A DNA stretch of 64,000 nucleotides from NCBI GenBank assembly GCA_002104905.1, contig MCFE01000028.1, forward strand, positions 163,862-227,861. The letters are read 5' to 3'. Position numbers and translations under genes: made by a program. Below the pieces are notes generated by a model. It did not search any database. It had not been told where the DNA came from and saw nothing but the letters and a program-made list of their open reading frames with translations. The stretch comes from Basidiobolus meristosporus CBS 931.73. Lineage: Eukaryota > Fungi > Basidiobolomycota. Positions 5,047-64,000 of the stretch are shown here, piece by piece (the first letter of the stretch is position 1; every line of letters begins with the position of its first letter).

Positions 5047-7312
5047 ATGTCTGACTTCAACAAATTCAAGCTTCCAAGTAAAAGCACCCAAAAGCCACAA
5101 CCGAGACGTAAGACTCCATTGAGATCTGGGTTTGAACATCAGGAAGAGGAAAGCCCAACCCGGCCCCGATTTCTTTCCAAATTTAATGTATCCTCGTCCA
5201 TTTTTGATAGTATAGGTATTTTACGATTCAGAGCGCCTTCGAAATGCTTTGTAGCAGCTCACTAGATAAACCATGCAATTTAATATTTTAGACAAGTTTA
5301 ATTCGGAAACAAACGTAGAGAAAAGTGGGATAATTGAAGAGGACAACCTTACCGGATCGCAAGCCCCAATCTCATCTCCTTCCAGAAATGCTGTCAGTTT
5401 CGCTGCATTTGTTCGTAGAGATCCGCTTCAGATCCAGCCTTCTACTGTGAAACGCGCTAGCGATGAGGGTGCTTCTAAGGAGGAAAATGGCACGCACATT
5501 GATAAACATTTATCCAGAAAGCAAATGTTGGAAGGTGCCCAATAATCACTTTATTTCACGATGATTAAGCCTGCTTATGTCTTTTGGAATATGGTAGAAT
5601 TGAACCCGACCAGCCTTGTCGACATAGCTGTTAATACTGTTAGCCCAGACAAACACAAGAAACCAGCTTGGCGAGGTATTTGTTACTGGCACGACACTTC
5701 ATCCCATAGATAAGAAATGAACCTCATGCCCCCGCAGATAATGCTTTCTCTGGATCCTATACACCACCTAATCGATATATCTTCGGGAGTCCAAAGAACG
5801 ATAGACTCCCAGAGAATTGGCTAAGTCTCTCGGATGGTACATTTTTTACCCGCCTATACACACTAGCAGAACGCTAACAATGCAAATTTATTGGTCAGAC
5901 CCATCGGTGTACCCTTTTTTGACCAAGAGAGACTCATTTGGCAGGAAAGCAGGTACAAGTGACCCAACACACATGTCGGATTGCCATGTCAGTCCGGCTT
6001 CAAAATATCGATTTAATATCAAGCAAATCATCGAGAACGAATCCTCTCGGGGGCTCAAGGTATCTAAGTGGTATTATGGTTAAACTGCATGCTTTCGTTG
6101 AATGACTTTGGAAATGCCCTGCGTAAACTATTAGGAGGAGATCGAAGATTTCGTTGATAACTCGCAGGTACGTTTGAATTCCTATTAATAGATATAGCAA
6201 CGCATCTCTATATTTGCTCATTGTTTTACGGAACCTCGCTCTGACTAATGCCTCTCAGTTAAGTAATTGGGGAGAGGGATGTCCAGCTACCGAGGTTCAT
6301 ATGTCAACTGATCCTTCCGATAATGTATGTTGCCCTTCATTTCAGCCCTTTATCAGCACCCCGAATCTGACGCGGGCTCGATTCTTTAGCTTGACCAAGA
6401 TTGCTCAGCTTCTTCCTATTTGTCTGATGTCGAAGCTCCCCAATCCCCGGTCCATCCCGGGACATCAGCACAAACCCCGGGAGGTGGGTCGGCTTGTACT
6501 ACCAACGTTTGTACAACTGAATCCCATCCCATTAGTGGAAATATCTCCATAATGGAATTGGCACAAAACCCCAATTTCCTGAGCCATACGCGTAACTCCC
6601 ATGATATGCCACTAGTAAGTCCGATGCAATGGCTTAATGGGGTGAAGATCCCAACCGCGTTGACGACCAGCACCAACGATCACCAGAGGAAGCGCAAGTA
6701 CATGATGAGGTAAGGTGAGTTTCGTGTACAGTCAAATCCCTGACTCGTGTTTACAATCTTGCCTGGCTAGGGGCGGATATGAGGAGCGACTTGTGAACCT
6801 CTTGATCCGAGAAAAATCCGACCACGCAATATGGGCACACGGCCTACGACGTGAAGGTATGGCATGGCTTGATGAAATCATCGCTAGATTCTCACGTCTT
6901 GATTATAGATAACCACACAGCCACCGAACGCAATCCGTCACTTTATGTAGAAGTGTACCATGTGAAGGAAACCTATGGATCCATTATCTGTCGCTGTAGA
7001 CTGCTTCCTTTGGATGCCATTAACGAGAAAGCCACGCACATTGATTTGCCCCCATTGGAGGATGAGTTTATTGATATACTGCTTTGTATGGAGCTCGATC
7101 CCAGTCACAGCACCCTCGCTTCTCGTCACTCGACACAGCCAGATCACGCAATTCATGTGGGAGATCTGCTGAAGATATACAAGCCTTATCAGGAGTTTAC
7201 GTTCGGTTCATCAAGTATACTGGACGACTGGGAAATCCCTCGAAATGGGCTGATCGTTACTCGATTCGTGGTTCGCAGCTCCGATGTTTCGGATAGAGAT
7301 AAACCCATTTGA
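5047..7312 (+). CDS. Multi-exon protein with a SPIDR (DUF4502)-like C-terminal region
   Basis: Spliced exons (intron 6710-6770) give RKRKYMMRGGYEERLVNLLIREKSDHAIWAH...LYVEVYHV...GDLLKIYKPYQEF...LIVTRF, resembling recalled SPIDR motifs. Upstream low-complexity exons are assumed to belong to the same gene. Confidence 0.5.
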
Positions 7313-48270: not shown

Positions 48271-50758
48271 ATGGAAGGGGTCATTGAATTATTCCAAAAA
48301 ATCGGGCTGACCGAACAGAGAGCCAAAGATACCGCCAAGAACAAGAAATTGGCCCCCACTTTGGAAAAAACTATTCAGGAAGCGGGTGTTGAGAACGGTT
48401 GCGACAAGAACATTGGTGCCCTCCTTTATACTCTAGCCTCCACCTTGAACAAGGAGGCCACCCCTTACCTTGGCTATCTGGCCCAGGCTGTGAATGCTGG
48501 AAAGCTTAATTCGGCCGAGCAAATCGCCGCCGCCATCGAGTACGTCGGCGACCTCAAAACTCCCGAGATTAACGAGCAAGAGTTCAACGAGCATTGCGGA
48601 GTGGGTGTGGTGATTACTCCCGAACAGGTCCAACGAAAGGTTACCCAGGAAATCGAGAAGAACAAGGAGAAAATCGTCAACGATAGATACCGTTGCCTTG
48701 GCATCACTCTAAGCACCATCAAGCAAAACCCCGAACTCAGATGGGCCAATGGCGCTTTGGTTAAGGATGAGGTGGAAAAGCAATTCTTGGCTCTTCTCGG
48801 TCCTAGAGATGAACGTGATCAAGTTACAAAGGGCAAGAAGAAGGAGAAGCAAGCTAAGCCTAGCTCTGGTATGTTGCTGCCTAACGCCGTTTCGGAGATC
48901 TATGGGGTGTATTAACTTGTTTGCTCTTTTAGACAAGAAGGCAGCCGCAGCCCCAGTAAAGAAAGACCCTAACAGTATTTTCTTCGAGGGTGAGCTCTCC
49001 AGACTCCACAAGCCCGGAGGTAACAAGCAAATCAAGGACGAATTAATGGTGGAGCACTTGAAGGCTACCGGCGGCAAGGTTGTCACTCGTTTCCCACCCG
49101 AGCCTAACGGCTTCCTCCATATCGGTCACGCCAAGGCCATCAACATCAACTTCGGTTATGCCGATGCTCACAAGGGTATCTGCTACCTTCGTTACGATGA
49201 TACAAACCCTGAAGCTGAGGAGGAGCAATACTTTGTTTCCATCCTTGAGACTGTCAAGTGGCTTGGATTTACTCCATACCAGATTACCTACTCTTCGGAC
49301 TATTTCCAAAGACTTTATGAGCTTGCCGTGTTCATGATCAAGAAAGGTTTGGCCTATGTCTGCTATTGCACTGGTGAGGAGATCTTTGCTCAGCGTGGTG
49401 GAGCTGAGAAGGGACCACGTTTCGAATGCCCCCATCGCGACCGCCCCATCGAGGAGTCGCTTGCGGAATTCGAGAAGATGAAGCAAGGCCAGTACAAAGA
49501 AGGTGAGGCTATTCTCCGTATGAAGATGAACATGCAAGATGGCAACCCACAATTCTGGGACCTTGTTGCCTATCGTATCCTGTACACCCCACATCACCGT
49601 ACCGGATCTGAGTGGTGCATCTATCCTACATACGATTTCACTCACTGCTTGGTTGATTCGTTCGAGAACATCACTCACTCTCTTTGCACCACCGAGTTCA
49701 CCCAATCCAGACCCTCGTACTTCTGGTTGTGTGATGCTGTTGAGGTCTACAAGCCAGTTCAGTGGGAATACGGACGTCTCAATGTTACCAACACCGTATT
49801 GTCCAAGCGTAAGGTATTGAAGTTGGTCGAGCTGGGCCACGTCCATGATTGGGATGATCCTAGACTGTTCACTCTTGCTGCTATCCGTCGCCGTGGTGTC
49901 CCACCGGAGGCTATTAATGTGTTTGTTCGTGAGCTGGGAGTTACCACCTCTCAATCCACCATCGACGTTGCCCGTTTGGATAATCATATCCGTGATCACC
50001 TTAACGAGACTGTTCCTCGTGTGATGGCACTTCTCGAACCCCTCAAGGTTACTCTTACCAACCTTCCTGAAGATTACCTTGAAACCATCACCGTCCCCAA
50101 TAAGCCTAGGGATCCCAAGCTTGGAGAGCACACCGTTCCATTCACAAGAACCGTTTACATCGATAGAAGCGACTTCAGAGAACAAGATTCCGCCGACTAC
50201 TTCCGTCTTGCCCCAGGAAAGGCCGTGGGTCTCTTGCATGTCAAATACCCCATCTCTTGCCAAGAGGTTGTCAAGGATGATGCAGGCAATGTCGTCGAAC
50301 TCATCTGTCGCTACGACAACGAAGGCGAGTTCAAGAAGCCCAAAACATATATTCAATGGGTTGCCGAATCCCCTGCTCACAACTCACCTGTCAAGATCGA
50401 TGAGATTAGACTCTATGAGAAATTGTTCTTCCACGCCAATCCTCAAGACAAGACTGCGGTCCCTGAGGGCTGGTTGAGCGACATCAACCCTAACTCACTC
50501 CAAGTGCTCCGCGGAGCAATTGTGGAGGTCGGCATCTGGGACATCATCAAGCGGTGGTATGAGCAGGCTGTTGCCAAGCAACAGGTCGATCGCATCGAAG
50601 ATATCCGTTTCCAGTTGGTCCGTATTGGCTACTTCTGCTTTGACAAGGATAGCCAGTTCAACGAGGAAGAATTCAAGAAGGACCCCACAAAGGGATTCAA
50701 ATCACTTGTTCTCAATCGTACTGTGACCTTGAAAGAAGATTCCAAGAAAGAAAATTAA
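48271..50758 (+). CDS. GLN4: Glutaminyl-tRNA synthetase
   Basis: Eukaryotic N-terminal domain; RFPPEPNGFLHIGHAK, LRYDDTNP, IYPTYDFTHC, VLSKRK; one intron near 48869-48931. Confidence 0.97.
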
Positions 50759-56051: not shown

Positions 56052-57929
56052 CTTGAGGGTATCTCCGATATGAGGAACTGAAATATGGGGAGGGTTGTAC
56101 GTGAACTCGAGGGGTGGTGAGGCTCTTTTTAAATGGGAGAAGAAAAATAAACTTTTGCAGATCTGACAATATAGAAATGCCATTGATGTGATGACCACAT
56201 ACTCCGTTTTCGCCGAGAATCTGATAAATTCTGTTGTTTTCATTGATCAGATTACTTTCGTGTAACATGTTTCATACCATCACTAATCAAATATTCCATA
56301 GAATAAGAGGTGCGTAACAACCATCCTTAACCGTTGGAAATGTAGATTATTAGCTGTGAAAATCTTCATCACCCATGCTCAGAATGTCCATGCAACTAAA
56401 ATCCAAAAGAAGTGTTTGTCCTACACTAGCCTGGTTAACCACACATACGATTTAGCCCTCATCCAATAAAAGCCTCTACTCATCTGATAACTCCCGCTTC
56501 CAACACTCGCGAAAAGGGCCGAAGCTATGAACCGCTTCTTGAAATGTGAAGGGCTCCCTGTTCGACATATCTGCGATGGTTAGGCTCTCCAAAATCTCTA
56601 CCATCCAGTATCATTGAAGGATCTGATAACCTGCCCCAAAGTAAAGGTGGACTTAAGATTAGATGATCAGATAAGCAGAGGCATTTATAATGTCATACAT
56701 TCTCAACCATAAGTTTATCAATGCTATTCTCATACATTCCCTTTTTGTCAAAATTCCGAGATTTATTCCCTAAAGGATAACACTCTCGGGTGAATTTTGG
56801 AAGGCCCAGATTGGCGTACAAGGAATCTGATAATTTATTAATTTGGGTCAAGTATGGAGCGGAGGGGAAGTGAATGGGCTGAAGGGGAAATATGTACTGA
56901 AGAATGATGTAGTCATACCAAGTCAATATCCTGTTAAAATGGAAACTTAATATTATCCATGTTTCTACAACTGCTCATATAAAAATATCAAACATTTTCT
57001 AACTCTGACCTTTGTGCAACGTATAGGGCGATGAACAGGGCCTCCAGAAAAAGGTAAAATATACGCTTAATTGGTCCACAGTTGATTTCCATCAGATAAC
57101 TATGACTGATTTTTGTTATCGAATTTGTGGTGACAGAAAGATGTTATCAGATATGCTTATGTTGGCAGGGATATTTCAAACCCAAGTGGTTAACGGGGTT
57201 TTGAGCATCACATACTTGTAATCTCAACAGCGACAAGCATCACCAGAGCGCATAGTCGAGATTAGAAAGGCGTTTGCCGACAATCAGCCTTCAGGTTGAT
57301 GTTGTAAGTACCTAATACGCAACTTGGAGCAATCGTTGTTCATTACGTAAGCATCGTCAATTTGATGGTGGTGTAGTCTTACCAATGGATTTATGAACAG
57401 CTTACCACGATGTAACAATGCTGATACACTGAATACACTCCAGTGTTGGTGCTTTCCTTGTTTTCCTAGCGCCTAACCCTATCGCTTAGGATAGTACACG
57501 GTGTTTATGAGAATGAAAAGTGGAAAACACTATCTATTTTATCTGATCTCCCGGTGCATTTTGATGATCATAATGGTGAATAGTAGTAGTATCCACTATT
57601 GTGCGTACTTATAATAATAAAAGCAATAGCGCGATCTTTATGAAATTAAACGTAATACTGAACATAGTACATCGGGGATTATGGCTTGCAGGGATACAGC
57701 TACTTACACAACTTCACTAAAAGTATACGAGAGAACAGCATGGTTGTTGAGGGTTATAAATATTAGCAATATCCAATACAAACTCTTGCATCTAAGGAGA
57801 TGCTAGCATTCAGGAATGTTTAGTACAGATCATTTTAGCGCTTGATCAGCTTGACTCATTCAAGTTCATACAGGTATGTGTATGTCAACTGGGTATTATC
57901 AGCATCATTGAGATCTACCCAGTGACAAG

Positions 57930-58230
57930 CACCAATGGGTGAAATCATTATTTAAAATCATAAATAACAAAGTAAGGTTATAAAACATATATCTGGAATT
58001 CTGCAAGTTAACAAGATGGACTTGGACTTTGCTGTTTCCCAAATATCTTCAATATCAAAATCAAGGGGAGAATGAAGGAAAACTGCTTGGCTTAGGGGGT
58101 AACAATCACCAACAGGTGAAATCATTATTTCAATAACTGAAGATAAAGAAGGCAAGTGCTACACAGGTAGCTTTTTTACCAGTGAATAAATTGAAGGTTA
58201 GGGGGGAGACAGTCACCAACAGGTGAAATC
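57930..58230. repeat. Three copies of a short hairpin motif downstream of the LINE ORF
   Basis: CACCAATGGGTGAAATC (57930), TCACCAACAGGTGAAATC (58106, 58213). Confidence 0.75.
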
Positions 58231-58260
58231 TTTGTTTCAGTTAAAACAAAGAAGCCAGCG

Positions 58261-60040
58261 CTACTGTTGTAGCTTTGATACAAGAGTGTGTAGCTGAGGG
58301 GAATTTGTAGGTAAGTTAACAAGAAGTGATGATAGTTCTTCAGTGCTCAAGACACTGTTCAGTGGGAAGGGGGGTAGCAAGAGGGGTAAGAATGATCTGT
58401 GAACAACATTAATGAGGGGAATATGATAAGAATTGATATTCATCATAAAGGGAGTGTGCTGCTTCAGATATTGCTGCCAAAGGTCTTTCAAGTACTTCAG
58501 GTAGGCCAGCTTGGGTTTCTTTGACTGCAGAATATAGTGAGCAAACTTCTTGACTTCAGGATCTCCAAGTATAGTTCTCCAGCAGGAGCCAGGTGTAGTG
58601 TGGTGTGTTCTCCTCCAGGCCTTGATTAGTGGGTGTTGCAGTGGTGAAGTTGGAGATATCAACTGGTTTTAAGGTAGAGTAGTCTGATCTTGTAGGGCAT
58701 AAACCCAAAAGCACCAAGAATAGCATGTCTGTAGGGGCATTCAGGCAGATAAGGCACTGGGGATGTAATGCACCACACTGCAAACTTGTCAAGCTTAGTG
58801 CAGTCTCAAGAGGTAAGAGAGAGAAGTGGTAAGCCAAATTCCAGGACAGGGAAGACAAACTGCTTCAGTGGAAGGAGGCAGCTGAGAGCTGAAGTTGTAG
58901 GAGGAGTAACAGCCATTAGCTTGTGGAGTGCTTGTCTTGCCAGGATAATTCTCTTCTTCAGGTGTGCTCCAGAGTCTAGTCCTGTAGGAAGGAAAGGAAA
59001 GCCAAGATATGTAGCAGAAACATGAGCAGGTAGAGTGCAGTTGTCTAAGTTGATAGGACAACCCAAAGGTACTGTCTTTGCAATGGAAAGCTGGAGATTA
59101 TTCTTCTGCAGATACTGGTGGATTGACTGGGAGTCTTGTTGCACATTGGAGGAGGATATTCTGATGTCATCAGCAAAGAGAGTAACCAGGCAGTCAGCAG
59201 AGAGTCTTGGGAAGTCATTCAGGAAAATGGCAAACAGTATAGGACCAGCACAGAGACTTGAACCACTCCATTAGGAACTGAGAACACTGGTGATTGCTCA
59301 CTTGGGTGCAGAGTTCTTGCTTGTGGATCCAGAAACAGAGACCTGACAAGGAGGGTGAGAGATGTAATGGAGAAGCATTGCAACTTGGACCAAAGCAGAT
59401 TTCTGTCAACTGAATCAAAGGCCTTAGTAATATCAAACAGAACAGAGGGATACTTGCACTGGAGAGAGTGATCTTGACTGAGAGTGACTTCATATTCCAA
59501 GGAGAGGCCAGGAATAAAGCTAAATTGTGCAGGGTAAAACTTGAGGGAGTCAGAGTAGAGCTCCTGATCAATCAGAAGCTCAAACACCTTTCTGCAGGTG
59601 GGCAGCAGAGATATTGGCCTGTGGGAGCAGGGGTCCAGGTGCTTTCCTTTACCCTTGTACAGTGGCAGAACATTTGCAAAGGACCATTCCTCAGGAGTAG
59701 AAGGCTGGGCTGAGCATTGCTGAAGCAGTGGAATCAGAAGAGCAGATATGGCCTTGGTACTAGTTGTCAGAAGCTCATAGGAGATTGTGTCCACACCTGG
59801 AGCAGTAGAGTTAGGAAGCCTCCTGAGCACATTATGGATTCTCTCTTGATCAAGTGCAAGTGGGATTGGCAGAGTCTTGAAGTTGGGATGAAAGCCAGGA
59901 GTTGAGTACTGCTTTGTAGAGAAGAAGATGTTAGCCAGCTGCTCTGTTGAAGGTAACTCCCTGGAAGAGGGCCTCATTGCCCTGTAGAGTCTTGACACTG
60001 TTCTTGTTATAGAGTTGGAAGATTTAGGGTGTAGGTGTTA
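58261..60040 (-). mobile_element. Degenerate non-LTR (LINE-type) retrotransposon, RT and thumb only
   Basis: TAPGVDTISYELL, RPISLLPTCRKVFE, DITKAFDSVD, GVVQ, FADD, YLGFPF, PVLEFGLPL; frameshifts and TGA stops; no endonuclease seen. Confidence 0.88.
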
Positions 60041-60339
60041 TAGTAAGGGCTAGGAAAAGGTTAGAAGAGCAGGGGGTCTGGGGGATGCAGTCCCCTAGAG
60101 AATAAAAAAGCAGGGGGTTTGGGGGATGCAATCCCCCATACTGCTCCCATACTCTTTAAATTCCCGTTGGATTACTTTTCTCTCATTCTTGGTTCTGGTC
60201 CCTTAGGGTTAGAATTCCTCCTCCTAACCCTTATCACCCTAACCATAAATATTTTTACCCTACAATTGGCACATTGTCTGCTCATACGGTGGGCATGTCT
60301 GGGCCAATATTTATCTCCCTATACTGTCCATACGCTCTG

Positions 60340-61036
60340 TGTTGTATCCAAGAGAAAGTGTAATAAAACTCTTGAATGGTTTAACTGAACCAAAGGGACA
60401 ATTAAGTGCAGAATCTTAGAATTGTCAGAGAGTGGCGGAAATATTAGCAGAAAAATTCTGTTCTAATATTGGTCTTGGATATAGCTGGGTTGGCTATAAA
60501 GGCAATGATATTTGTTTGCTAGGCAGGCTAGGCTTGGTGTTCTTTGGAGTGCTAGATATACTAGGCTTGGATAGAAACTAGAACGGAATTGTTGGATTCT
60601 TATTTTTGCTGAGACAGAATCTTAATTTCGTTGAGACACACACTAAGCCAAAAGGTTCAGTACACTTTATTTATACTTTTCTGATCAAGTTGAATTAGTA
60701 AGTGCCAAGGGACTGGATTGATTGAAATCAATTTGGGTGTTCATAGGTGCATAAGATAAATGAAAATTACATCATCAATCAACTGATGTCTTGGCAATTG
60801 CACAGTGGTTGGATAGATCTCAGATGACTAATCACCTGGGAAGGCTTGGCAGATAGGTTGATAACATGATGACCATTTGAAAATAGATCAGGTGTGATAG
60901 CTAAAAATAGATTCTGAGGTGGGATCAAATAAATTGTAACTGGGATTTGTTATGTTTGGGTTAGGGAAAATCAGTTAGGGTACTAGATTTTCAAACGGAG
61001 TAAAATTGGCTAAGTTTTAAATGTTGATGCACAACA
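60340..61036 (-). mobile_element. 3' LTR of the Ty3/gypsy element
   Basis: Minus strand starts TGTTGT right after the pol stop and purine tract GGAAGGAAGTGA; proposed end ACAACA at 60340 (6-bp inverted termini); TATAAATAAA inside. The distal end is less certain. Confidence 0.65.
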
Positions 61037-63738
61037 TCACTTCCTTCCAGAAGAGGAGTTTTTTGATACCTTCTGGGTTCCTCTGCGGCTCCAATACTGA
61101 TCAATAATGGCAACATCATCAAAGTTGGTGTAAGGTTCCCAGGTGTTGTGTTTGGCATCATAGCCTTTCCACTTGACTAAATAAAGACAATTTGGTTCTT
61201 CTCCATCATGGTCCACAATAGCTTCCACTTCATAGGATTCCAAAGTTACTGGGTCTTGAGAAATGAGTTTGAGTGAAGAAGGTGGAAAGTTTTTGGGTAG
61301 CAGTGCTCCAGTGTTATCCTGAAGTACATAAGATCCTCCAGTAGTGCGTCTGACAACCTTGAATGGTCCTTCATACTTGGGGTCAAGCTTAGATTGCCGG
61401 ATTGGATCTAGAGTCATGACATATGACCCATCTGGGAAGCTGCTGTTCCTGTGTCTTGAGGCGTACGTTGAAGTCATCTTTTGCTGAGAGGCCTTACTTC
61501 TGGCACTGATAGCAGGGTAGACAATGTTGGTAAGGTGCTCAAGCCGGTTCTTTAGCTTAACTGTATTCAAACTTGCTAACTCTGTATTCTGGTAGTCTCC
61601 AAAGTGGTTGTATCTTCTTCCAAACATCAAGGAAAATGGGGTTGATCCATGTAGAGCGGCAATTTTGGTGTTGATAGCATACTGTACAGTTGGAATGTAC
61701 TTGTCCCAATTCTTCTTGATACCTTTGATAGATTTCCTGATGATGTTCACTGAGGTCTGAACATGTCTTTCAGCCAGTCCATTAGCTTTGGGATGATATG
61801 GAGTGATCAGACAATGATCAATGGTGCTATTCTGGCAAAGGGCTTTGATCACGTGATTCACAAATTCTGTTCCATTATCCGATTGAACGACCTTAGGGAA
61901 TCCAAAAAGGCAGAAGAGCTTGAATAGTTCTTGTGCAATAGTGGCCGCATACTTGTCTGGGATGGCTTTGAGGAAGACAAATCGTGTGCAGACATCCACA
62001 ATTACAAAGAGGTAGTGATTACCATCATCACTAGTGGTGAAAGGTCCAGCTAGATCAATTGCAATATGATCCATAGGAAGGCTTGCATGGATGGGGCTCA
62101 AAGGGTGAAATCCATGGCGGCTGATATTGTAAAGTTGACATTCTCTGCACAACTTGACAAATTCTAAGCAGTCAACTTTGATATTTGGCCAGTGATATCC
62201 ATCAGAGTGTAGCTTCTTCATAAGTGTGTCAGCTCCAAAGTGGCCAAGTAAATGACTCCTCTGTATCAATGTTTTCCTTTGTTCTTCAGGTGGGATTTTC
62301 CAAGTTGCTGAATCCAGTTGAGGAATTATTTTGGAAGTTGTAGAGAGTTTACTGATTACATCAGTAATCACGTGTCCCTCCCAAGGTGAAGTTGGAAAAA
62401 GTCTTGACAGATGGTCAGGAAGGATGTTGAGAATTCCTGGGCGATGAATAACTGTATATTCATAATCAAGTAGAGTATCAAGCCAGTTGGTAAGCATTGG
62501 AGTCAGAGTCTTCGGAGTGTGGATATAGACAAGGGCTTGGTGGTCAGTGTACAAGGTAAAAGGATTACCCCATAGATACTGATGAAACTTCTTCAAGGCA
62601 AAGACTATGGCAAGTAGCTCCTTCTTGGTAGCAGAGTAGTTTCTCTCAGCAGGTTGTAGGGACCTGGCTTGGAAAGAGATCCAGTGAGGCGGATTTTGGT
62701 CTTCATCTTGATAGAGGACTGCCCCTAACCCAACATTAGATGCATCTGTAGCAACAACAAAGGACTTAGTAAAGTCTGGGTAGGATAAGGTGGGTGCTTG
62801 TGGAAGCAGTTGGCAGAGTGACTCAAAGGCTTGGTCATGAGTCTTGTTCCAGGCTGAGGTGAGATCAGAGCTATGGCGTAATGCATCTAATGGGGCACTC
62901 AATGAGGACATGAGTGGTATGTGTTCCCTGAAATAGTTGAATACTCCAAGATAATGTTGAAGTTGCTTGGCGCTAGTGGGTTTTGGCCATTCTGGGATAT
63001 TGACCAGTTTGAAAGGATCTAATTGGTGGCCAGCTGGTGTGACTATAAATCCAAGTAGATTGATTTTGAGGCGGGCAAAACTGCACTTTTCAGCATTGAG
63101 AATCAGTCCAGCAGTTGTCAGTCTGTTGATTACATCAGTGACATGGGTTGCATGATCATCACGGTTAGTGGAGAATATGATGACATCATCAACAAATACC
63201 AATGCGTATGGTGCATTCTTGAGTATTATAGTCATGACTCTCTGAAACTTGCTGGTAAGTGTCTTTAGGCCAAAGGGAGCTCCCTGAAACATCCATTGCA
63301 TATTATTCCAAGTAAAGGCAGTCTTATGCTGATGATCAGGATGGATCTGGAATTGGTGATATGCATCCTTCAAGTCCAACTTGGAGAATACTTTTGCTCC
63401 TGATAGTGCGGAAAAGATATCTTAGATTCTTCGAATTGGAAACTTGTCATCTTGGAGAAGCTTGTTCAGAGGTCTGGGGTCCAAACAGGGTCTCTTCAGG
63501 GTTAGATTTCCATCAGCATCTTTCTTTGGTGCAAGCGTCAAAGGGCTGTTGAATGTTGTGTTGACAGGGGCTTGAGTGATAATTCCATTGTCAGCCCATT
63601 TTTGGACTATCTCATCAACTAAGTGTTGACATGAATGCGGAATTGGGTATTGCCTCCTCCATGTTGACTCACCAGGTGGGGTCTCTAGTGTAACAATGGA
63701 CTCTGGGATGGTGCAGAAGCTGTTCCTTGGGTTTAGGG
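61037..63738 (-). mobile_element. Ty3/gypsy chromovirus pol (RT-RNaseH-integrase-chromodomain), 5' part lost
   Basis: LDLKDAYHQ, FVDD, TDASNVG, HHCC, IDLAG/SDNGTEF/AERHV DDE, YEGPF, YEVEAIVDH...YLVKWKGY...TWEP; the frame continues upstream of the 780-aa ORF through one TAA (63422-63424) to the telomere. Confidence 0.96.
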
Positions 63739-64000
63739 CTAGGGTTAGGGTTAGGGTTAGGGTAGGGTTAGGGTTAGGGTTAGGGTTAGGGTTAGGGTTA
63801 GGGTTAGGGTTAGGGTTAGGTTAGGGTTAGGGTTAGGGTTAGGGTTAGGGTTAGGGTTAGGGTTAGGGTTAGGGTTAGGGTTAGGGTTAGGGTTAGGGTT
63901 AGGGTTAGGGTTAGGGTTAGGGTTAGGGTTAGGGTTAGGGTTAGGGTTAGGGTTAGGGTTAGGGTTAGGGTTAGGGTTAGGGTTAGGGTTAGGGTTAGGG
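63732..64000 (+). repeat. Telomere (TTAGGG)n
   Basis: About 44 repeats to the window end; proximal variants TTTAGGG, CTAGGG, TAGGG (63763) and TTAGG (63816). Confidence 0.98.

Follow-up and report, generated by a model that had tools for sequence, protein, structure and literature searches.

The closest described counterpart of the chromosome end reported here is the healing of broken ends in Magnaporthe/Pyricularia oryzae, in which telomeres are added to truncated rDNA and to truncated copies of the retroelement MoTeR (Rahnama et al. 2020, PMC7367193; Rahnama et al. 2021, PMC8381367). In Magnaporthe oryzae, 19 of 24 de novo telomeres grew from seeds of 1-4 nt, in-register seeds of 1-7 nt were present in 17 of 23 truncated MoTeRs, and the junctions without a seed mostly end in C (5 of 6; PMC7367193). 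Healing at short seeds, including those of truncated retrotransposons, is already known in fungi from this work on Magnaporthe, and by this measure the event described below is an ordinary one.

We analysed a stretch of 64,000 nt from Basidiobolus meristosporus (hereafter the window). Both this fungus and Magnaporthe have TTAGGG telomeres, and in both cases telomere repeats directly follow a 5'-truncated retroelement or other internal sequence, the join lying at a short telomere-like seed that is in register. One reading of our junction, GGGC followed by TAGGG, would also resemble the seedless Magnaporthe junctions that end in C. However, the present case concerns an early-diverging fungus and, in place of a telomere-specific non-LTR element, an LTR chromovirus, and its seed is 9-12 nt long with one extra T, compared with 1-7 nt in Magnaporthe. 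Moreover, the Magnaporthe junctions come with time-series and read data, whereas ours is known from the assembled sequence alone.

A second comparison is offered by the SiRTAs of Saccharomyces cerevisiae (PMC10055226, PMC7018233), which likewise are internal telomere-like tracts, oriented so that the centromere-containing fragment is stabilised, and serve as telomerase substrates after a distal break. What defines SiRTAs is their recurrent use and their binding of Cdc13, whereas we describe a single event from its sequence only, and the tract here lies inside a mobile element and is not conserved among the relatives of that element. With the chromoviruses (MAGGY and Tcn1-like elements; PMC2864245) our element shares the order RT, RNase H, integrase and C-terminal chromodomain, and its position in repeat-rich terminal chromatin is as expected if the chromodomain guides integration to heterochromatin; unlike intact chromoviruses, it has no 5' LTR, gag or protease and carries one premature stop. 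Telomere-specific retrotransposons (HeT-A/TART, SART and MoTeR) have their 3' ends joined to telomere repeats through end-priming and not through integrase; the gypsy element shows no such stub at its three candidate LTR ends, among which the true one is not fixed.

From these comparisons and the evidence below, the chromosome end was probably made by terminal truncation followed by healing at a seed encoded by the element. If so, it is a further clean instance of a broken chromosome healed at a telomere-like seed, in an early-diverging fungus.

The terminal array and the truncated pol gene

The features at the distal end of the window are:

63740 to 64000, plus strand: terminal telomere array, TAGGG and then TTAGGG units, with one-base-short units at 63763 and 63816
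63425 to 63739, minus strand: 5'-truncated pol, comprising the protease-RT linker and the start of RT (residues 453-557 of the relative P0002, see below)
63422 to 63424, minus strand: the lone in-frame TAA of pol, in the N-terminal part of RT
61040 to 63421, minus strand: remaining pol, with RT, RNase H, integrase zinc finger, integrase core and C-terminal chromodomain

Tandem Repeats Finder, run on the 64,000-nt window, reports a TTAGGG array of period 6 at 63733-64000 (45 copies, 97% matches), which makes up the final 268 bases up to the last base (64000); about 44 TTAGGG units lie between roughly 63740 and the window end. Read unit by unit, the array begins with CCTTGGG, TTTAGGG (63732) and CTAGGG (63739), followed by three TTAGGG, one TAGGG without one T (63763), eight TTAGGG, one TTAGG without one G (63816) and 29 perfect units. 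This order agrees with the preliminary description, in which a near-telomeric seed grades into TTAGGG with two slipped repeats. The G-rich strand runs 5' to 3' toward the end, the polarity of a right-hand telomere.

It is distinctly unlikely that the join is an artefact (a chimeric read or a repeat mis-assembly) or that the array is an interstitial TTAGGG tract beyond which the contig continues. The gypsy element is a repeat, a type of sequence prone to mis-joining, the two one-base slips look like long-read errors, and the boundary of a window is no proof of a contig end. On the other hand, the polarity of the array suits a right end, a stack of retroelements lies directly proximal, and a random chimera would not land exactly on a rare telomere-like seed.

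The array abuts the pol gene of a Ty3/gypsy chromovirus on the minus strand, encoding RT, RNase H, integrase and a chromodomain. Its frame contains a 780-aa ORF (61037-63379, minus strand, stop codon 61037-61039) and is interrupted by the single in-frame TAA at 63422-63424 with zero frameshifts, and the copy is therefore young. The stop was not read through, and the pieces on either side of it were searched separately. In the 794-aa piece, Pfam identifies RVT_1 (from profile position 63), RT_RNaseH(_2), Integrase_H2C2, rve and Chromo, in this order; the chromodomain (PF00385 Chromo, residues 730-779, E = 5.6e-14) is C-terminal to the integrase, and the domain set thus places the element among the Ty3/gypsy chromoviruses.

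The best full-length relative is a 1370-aa protein from a metagenome contig (P0002 on contig L002), which comprises gag (22-105), a zinc knuckle (213-228), protease (300-389) and RT (from 539), followed by RNase H, integrase and chromodomain. A tblastn search of the window with this protein gave one alignment (residues 453-1370 against 63739-61043, 56% identity), and residues 1-452 have no match anywhere in the window. The cut thus falls between protease and RT, gag, zinc knuckle and protease are gone, and the truncation point is read directly from this alignment: relative to the intact form, the element is cut abruptly. Neither a 5' LTR nor gag, zinc knuckle or protease was found in the window, which bears out the preliminary description that these parts, with the exception of the zinc knuckle that it did not name, are missing and that the cut lies upstream of RT.

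The minus-strand codons CTA GCC CTA AAC CCA AGG AAC AGC TTC TGC next to the array are in the pol frame. We rejected the open frame running into the repeats as evidence, since CCCTAA repeats are stop-free in two of three frames and such continuity is expected by chance.

The best matches in a word-based protein search have identities of 56% (794-aa pol piece), 76% (106-aa N-terminal piece) and 61% (150-aa C-terminal piece), where the 76% match belongs to B. ranarum and spans 58% of the 106-aa N-terminal query. The proteins closest to pol are from Mucoromycota and Basidiobolus, and no copy of the same family was present among the relatives from the three protein searches (pol, N-terminal and C-terminal pieces). 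Such affinities, in a chromovirus with intact domains, led us to reject a human origin of the sequence, and the B. ranarum match independently supports the genus. Within the window the gypsy element and its LTR match only themselves, with no second copy of either. Exact-pattern scans of the metagenome contigs, with a junction-adjacent pattern and a conserved RT pattern, were blank, and the fungus is probably not in that collection.

The junction seed and the element/telomere boundary

The seed and the codons at the corresponding site of two relatives are as follows:

63728 to 63739, plus strand: junction seed TGGGTTTAGGGC, antisense of the pol codons GCC CTA AAC CCA (A-L-N-P), putatively derived from the element
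Window: CTA GCC CTA AAC CCA AGG AAC AGC, encoding L A L N P R N S
P0002: AAT GCC TTG ATA CCT AAG AAT AGT, encoding N A L I P K N S
B. ranarum: AAC CAG ATA ATC CAA AAG AAT AGC, encoding N Q I I Q K N S

The tblastn alignment with the full-length relative begins exactly at 63739. The closest relative at this site is a fragment from B. ranarum (P0125 on contig L001; 76% protein and 74% DNA identity), and the blastn alignment to its contig begins at TAAACCCA, which is plus-strand position 63735. Homology to the relatives hence extends to 63735-63739, within the string GGGTTTAGGGC, and a short telomere-like seed of the truncated sequence is found at the junction, with homology that reaches into TGGGTTTAGGGC to an uncertain exact extent.

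The residues N-A-L-I-P-K-N-S-F-C of the full-length relative correspond to A-L-N-P-R-N-S-F-C in the window, and the Ala codon GCC is identical in both. An Asn four residues ahead of the Pro is invariant in 68 of 68 relatives. In an ungapped alignment, the window has the telomere-type CTA in place of this Asn, and the Ala is the only match to the consensus of the 68 relatives; according to this reading, 63739 in the Ala codon would be the last position of the element, and TAGGG at 63740 would open the telomere. MAFFT prefers to open a gap of three codons and pair the Asn of the window with the invariant one, an alignment that would make L-A-L-N native and put the join at about 63742, in register after ...GGGCTAG. 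By a third reading, only ...CCTTGGG could be native, with TTTAGGG and CTAGGG as degenerate repeats, but this fits the nucleotide alignment to B. ranarum less well. The boundary between element and telomere may accordingly be placed within 63736-63742 and no finer.

Comparison with these relatives, which are 56-76% identical, suggests that a seed was native to the element. At least TGGGTTTAG is quite probably the element's own, and TGGGTTTAGGGC(TAG) possibly belongs to it as well.

The rarity of such a tract was counted directly. The junction 10-mer GGGTTTAGGG differs from the telomere repeat by no more than one edit, and 10-mers this close to it start at 32 of about 63,700 plus-strand positions (about 5e-4), compared with 7-25 positions in shuffled sequence. 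The chance that a random junction falls on a stretch of this kind is of the order of 5e-4 to 3e-3, and the seed therefore probably guided the join.

The same relatives speak to a wider claim of the preliminary description, that these elements, if the seed is conserved in the family, act as portable telomere-addition sites. This claim is unsupported, as neither B. ranarum (L001) nor the metagenome relative (L002) has the seed in its corresponding codons. A SiRTA-like hotspot would have its seed conserved among copies of the element, and such conservation is seen neither in the two nearest reachable relatives nor in the consensus of the 68, whose residues at the site (N-x-x-I-P) do not encode the seed.

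The 3' LTR and the proximal retroelement stack

Proximal to pol, the following features were recognised:

61040 to 61048, minus strand: polypurine tract GGAAGGAAG, directly ahead of the LTR start
60784 to 61039, minus strand: 3' LTR, minimal extent; the start is supported by the metagenome relative and the end is putative
60961 to 60980, minus strand: telomere-like CCCTAAC-N7-CCCTAACCC within the LTR, which reads GGGTTAGGG and GTTAGGG on the plus strand
60203 to 60783, minus strand: non-coding unit with a hairpin-like GGGTTAG...CTAACCC end and then TAA; its putative 5' limit hinges on the LTR end
60024 to 60202, minus strand: short unit with two 41-nt tandem repeats (60062-60136) and a CCCTAA end, joined to the 5'-truncated LINE
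58202 to 60023, minus strand: non-LTR (LINE) element, 5'-truncated and frameshifted, with an RT domain and a 3' tail of a C-run then TAA
57918 to 58201, minus strand: two short units (57918-58094 and 58095-58201) in the proximal part of the stack, with the same 38-nt 3' tail as the LINE

The metagenome relative L002 has the same arrangement of a purine run followed by TGATGTT, and the 3' LTR is therefore taken to start at 61039. Its end may be ACATCA at 60784, which gives a 6-nt terminal inverted repeat and an LTR of about 256 bp, or CAACA at 60590 or 60340; a second LTR is absent from the contig of the relative. That the polypurine tract and LTR start are present as in L002 suggests a copy integrated in the usual way.

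Between 57.9 and 60.2 kb, retroelement units on the minus strand form a one-way stack, and the gypsy element is distal to it. The LINE has its RT domain at 59219-59998. Its 38-nt 3' tail, a C-run then TAA, is common to three units (57918-57955, 58095-58132 and 58202-58239), while two further units have CCCTAA ends (60024-60029 and 60203-60208). Proximal to the stack, at 54.4-56.1 kb, is a unique MFS gene. Exact telomere-like 9-mers are almost confined to the terminal 6.5 kb of the window. What lies outermost beneath the cap is not a LINE but an LTR retrotransposon cut in the middle of a gene. The unit at 60203-60783 is probably the retroelement that received the gypsy insertion.

The orientation of these elements raises the question whether the gypsy copy arrived in the same manner as the stack, with the LINE reverse transcriptase copying gypsy RNA onto a G-overhang and telomerase then capping the 5'-truncated copy. 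Like all stack units, the gypsy element has its sense strand on the minus strand, its 3' end proximal and its 5' truncation distal, although a common orientation amounts to a 50% coincidence. Its sense strand has CCCUAA-type motifs in U3 and pol, among them the CCCTAAC-N7-CCCTAACCC of the LTR, and the LTR motifs have the same orientation as the junction seed. Exact telomere-like 8-mers with G on the plus strand occur at three sites in the gypsy piece of about 3 kb, compared with about 0.27 expected, but this enrichment was noticed post hoc. Moreover, the polypurine tract and LTR start are intact, at least 170 nt of sequence continue past the CCCTAA motifs without a junction of the stack type, and at each of the three candidate LTR ends (60784, 60590 and 60340), among which the true end is not fixed, the sequence goes on without a telomere stub. 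Truncation at the seed also fits the healing of a break better than a random 5' truncation, and we regard addition through RNA as very improbable.

To an even broader proposal we give very little credence: that the sense-strand CCCUAA-type motifs of this chromovirus family (one in pol and two in U3) would be recurrent telomere-addition sites, or would lead to RNA being copied onto ends by the LINE machinery. Repeated use of the same pol or LTR motif at several ends would, if true, be notable.

Proposed history of the chromosome end

The anatomy of the end, with the array on a cut pol gene and the stack proximal to it, is directly visible, and from it we infer an order of events. Chromodomains direct integration to heterochromatin. 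The gypsy element is distal to the telomere-tailed LINE/SINE stack, and hence probably was in terminal heterochromatin before the end was lost. In a first step, then, a chromodomain-bearing Ty3/gypsy element would have integrated into the terminal LINE/SINE stack, antisense to the plus strand. Judging from the anatomy, a break or erosion would subsequently have removed everything distal to the protease-RT point. By our estimate, about 2.4 kb of the element would have gone, with the 5' LTR, gag and protease in it, as would anything beyond. As the relatives suggest, the exposed 3' end would have borne the near-telomeric TGGGTTTAG(GGC) of the element, which could have base-paired with the template of telomerase or attracted proteins that bind chromosome ends. 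The chromosome end would in this way have taken in an LTR element, lost sequence and been re-capped.

A break healed by telomerase at a retrotransposon seed was the main proposal of the preliminary description. The part that stands is a truncation in pol with a seed that is likely native, given the homology of the relatives into the seed and the rarity of the 10-mer; the part assigned to telomerase holds less firmly, as recombinational capture would leave the same sequence. In such a capture, the broken pol end would anneal through the seed to another telomere or an interstitial repeat and be copied by break-induced replication, with telomerase not priming on the seed. The seed microhomology would equally allow strand invasion, a donor with degenerate basal repeats could account for TTTAGGG and CTAGGG, the off-consensus units at the base, and break-induced replication at naked ends is known beside healing in Magnaporthe (PMC7367193). 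However, break-induced replication would have had about ten nt of imperfect homology to start from, which is very little for this process, and the rest of the array is nearly perfect, so that capture seems unlikely. In the healing that we favour, telomerase would have extended the seed-bearing end to the full-length TTAGGG array of at least 44 units.

State of the gypsy pol copy

The pol reading frame of the terminal gypsy element, a 5'-truncated Ty3/gypsy chromovirus on the minus strand, is interrupted by a single in-frame TAA (63422-63424) and is otherwise open over about 900 codons. The gypsy copy is young, yet already inactive.

Telomere-like motifs within the gypsy element

Exact telomere-like 8-mers with the C-rich strand on the sense strand of the element were found at three sites along its approximately 3 kb, against about 0.27 expected, and a single telomere-like 9-mer lies in the opposite orientation at 62723 (62722-62733). 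The occurrence of such motifs in both the LTR and pol may be due to chance, or may be a property of the chromovirus family.

The sense strand of the LTR carries CCCTAAC-N7-CCCTAACCC at 60961-60980, and a second antisense AGGGTTAG is located within pol at about 63498 (63497-63504).

Nested insertion in a related chromovirus

In the metagenome contig L002, which holds a full-length relative, the chromovirus sits within the RNase H region of a different gypsy element (5270-5408; translation ...FTILTDHQALTWL...), and nested insertion into other transposons therefore occurs in this clade.

Host genes and retroelement units proximal to the gypsy element

The last host genes ahead of the repeat zone are:

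48749-50758, glutaminyl-tRNA-synthetase-like ORF, 669 aa
54437-56060, minus strand, multi-exon MFS transporter (Pfam MFS_1)

Between these genes and the retroelement stack lies an AT-rich stretch (56-58 kb; GC 0.39). The stack itself (57918-60023) consists of units that run one way, all on the minus strand. Three of the units, among them a 5'-truncated and frameshifted LINE with an RT domain, have in common a 38-nt 3' tail, in which a TCACC..GGTGA hairpin is followed by a C-run and TAA. Two more units, at 60024-60262, end in CCCTAA; their tails differ, and one of these features is found in each:

60062-60136, two 41-nt tandem repeats, each with the hairpin GGGGGATGCAnTCCCC
60199-60258, head-to-head telomere-like palindrome, TTAGGGTTAG..CTAACCCTTATCACCCTAACC
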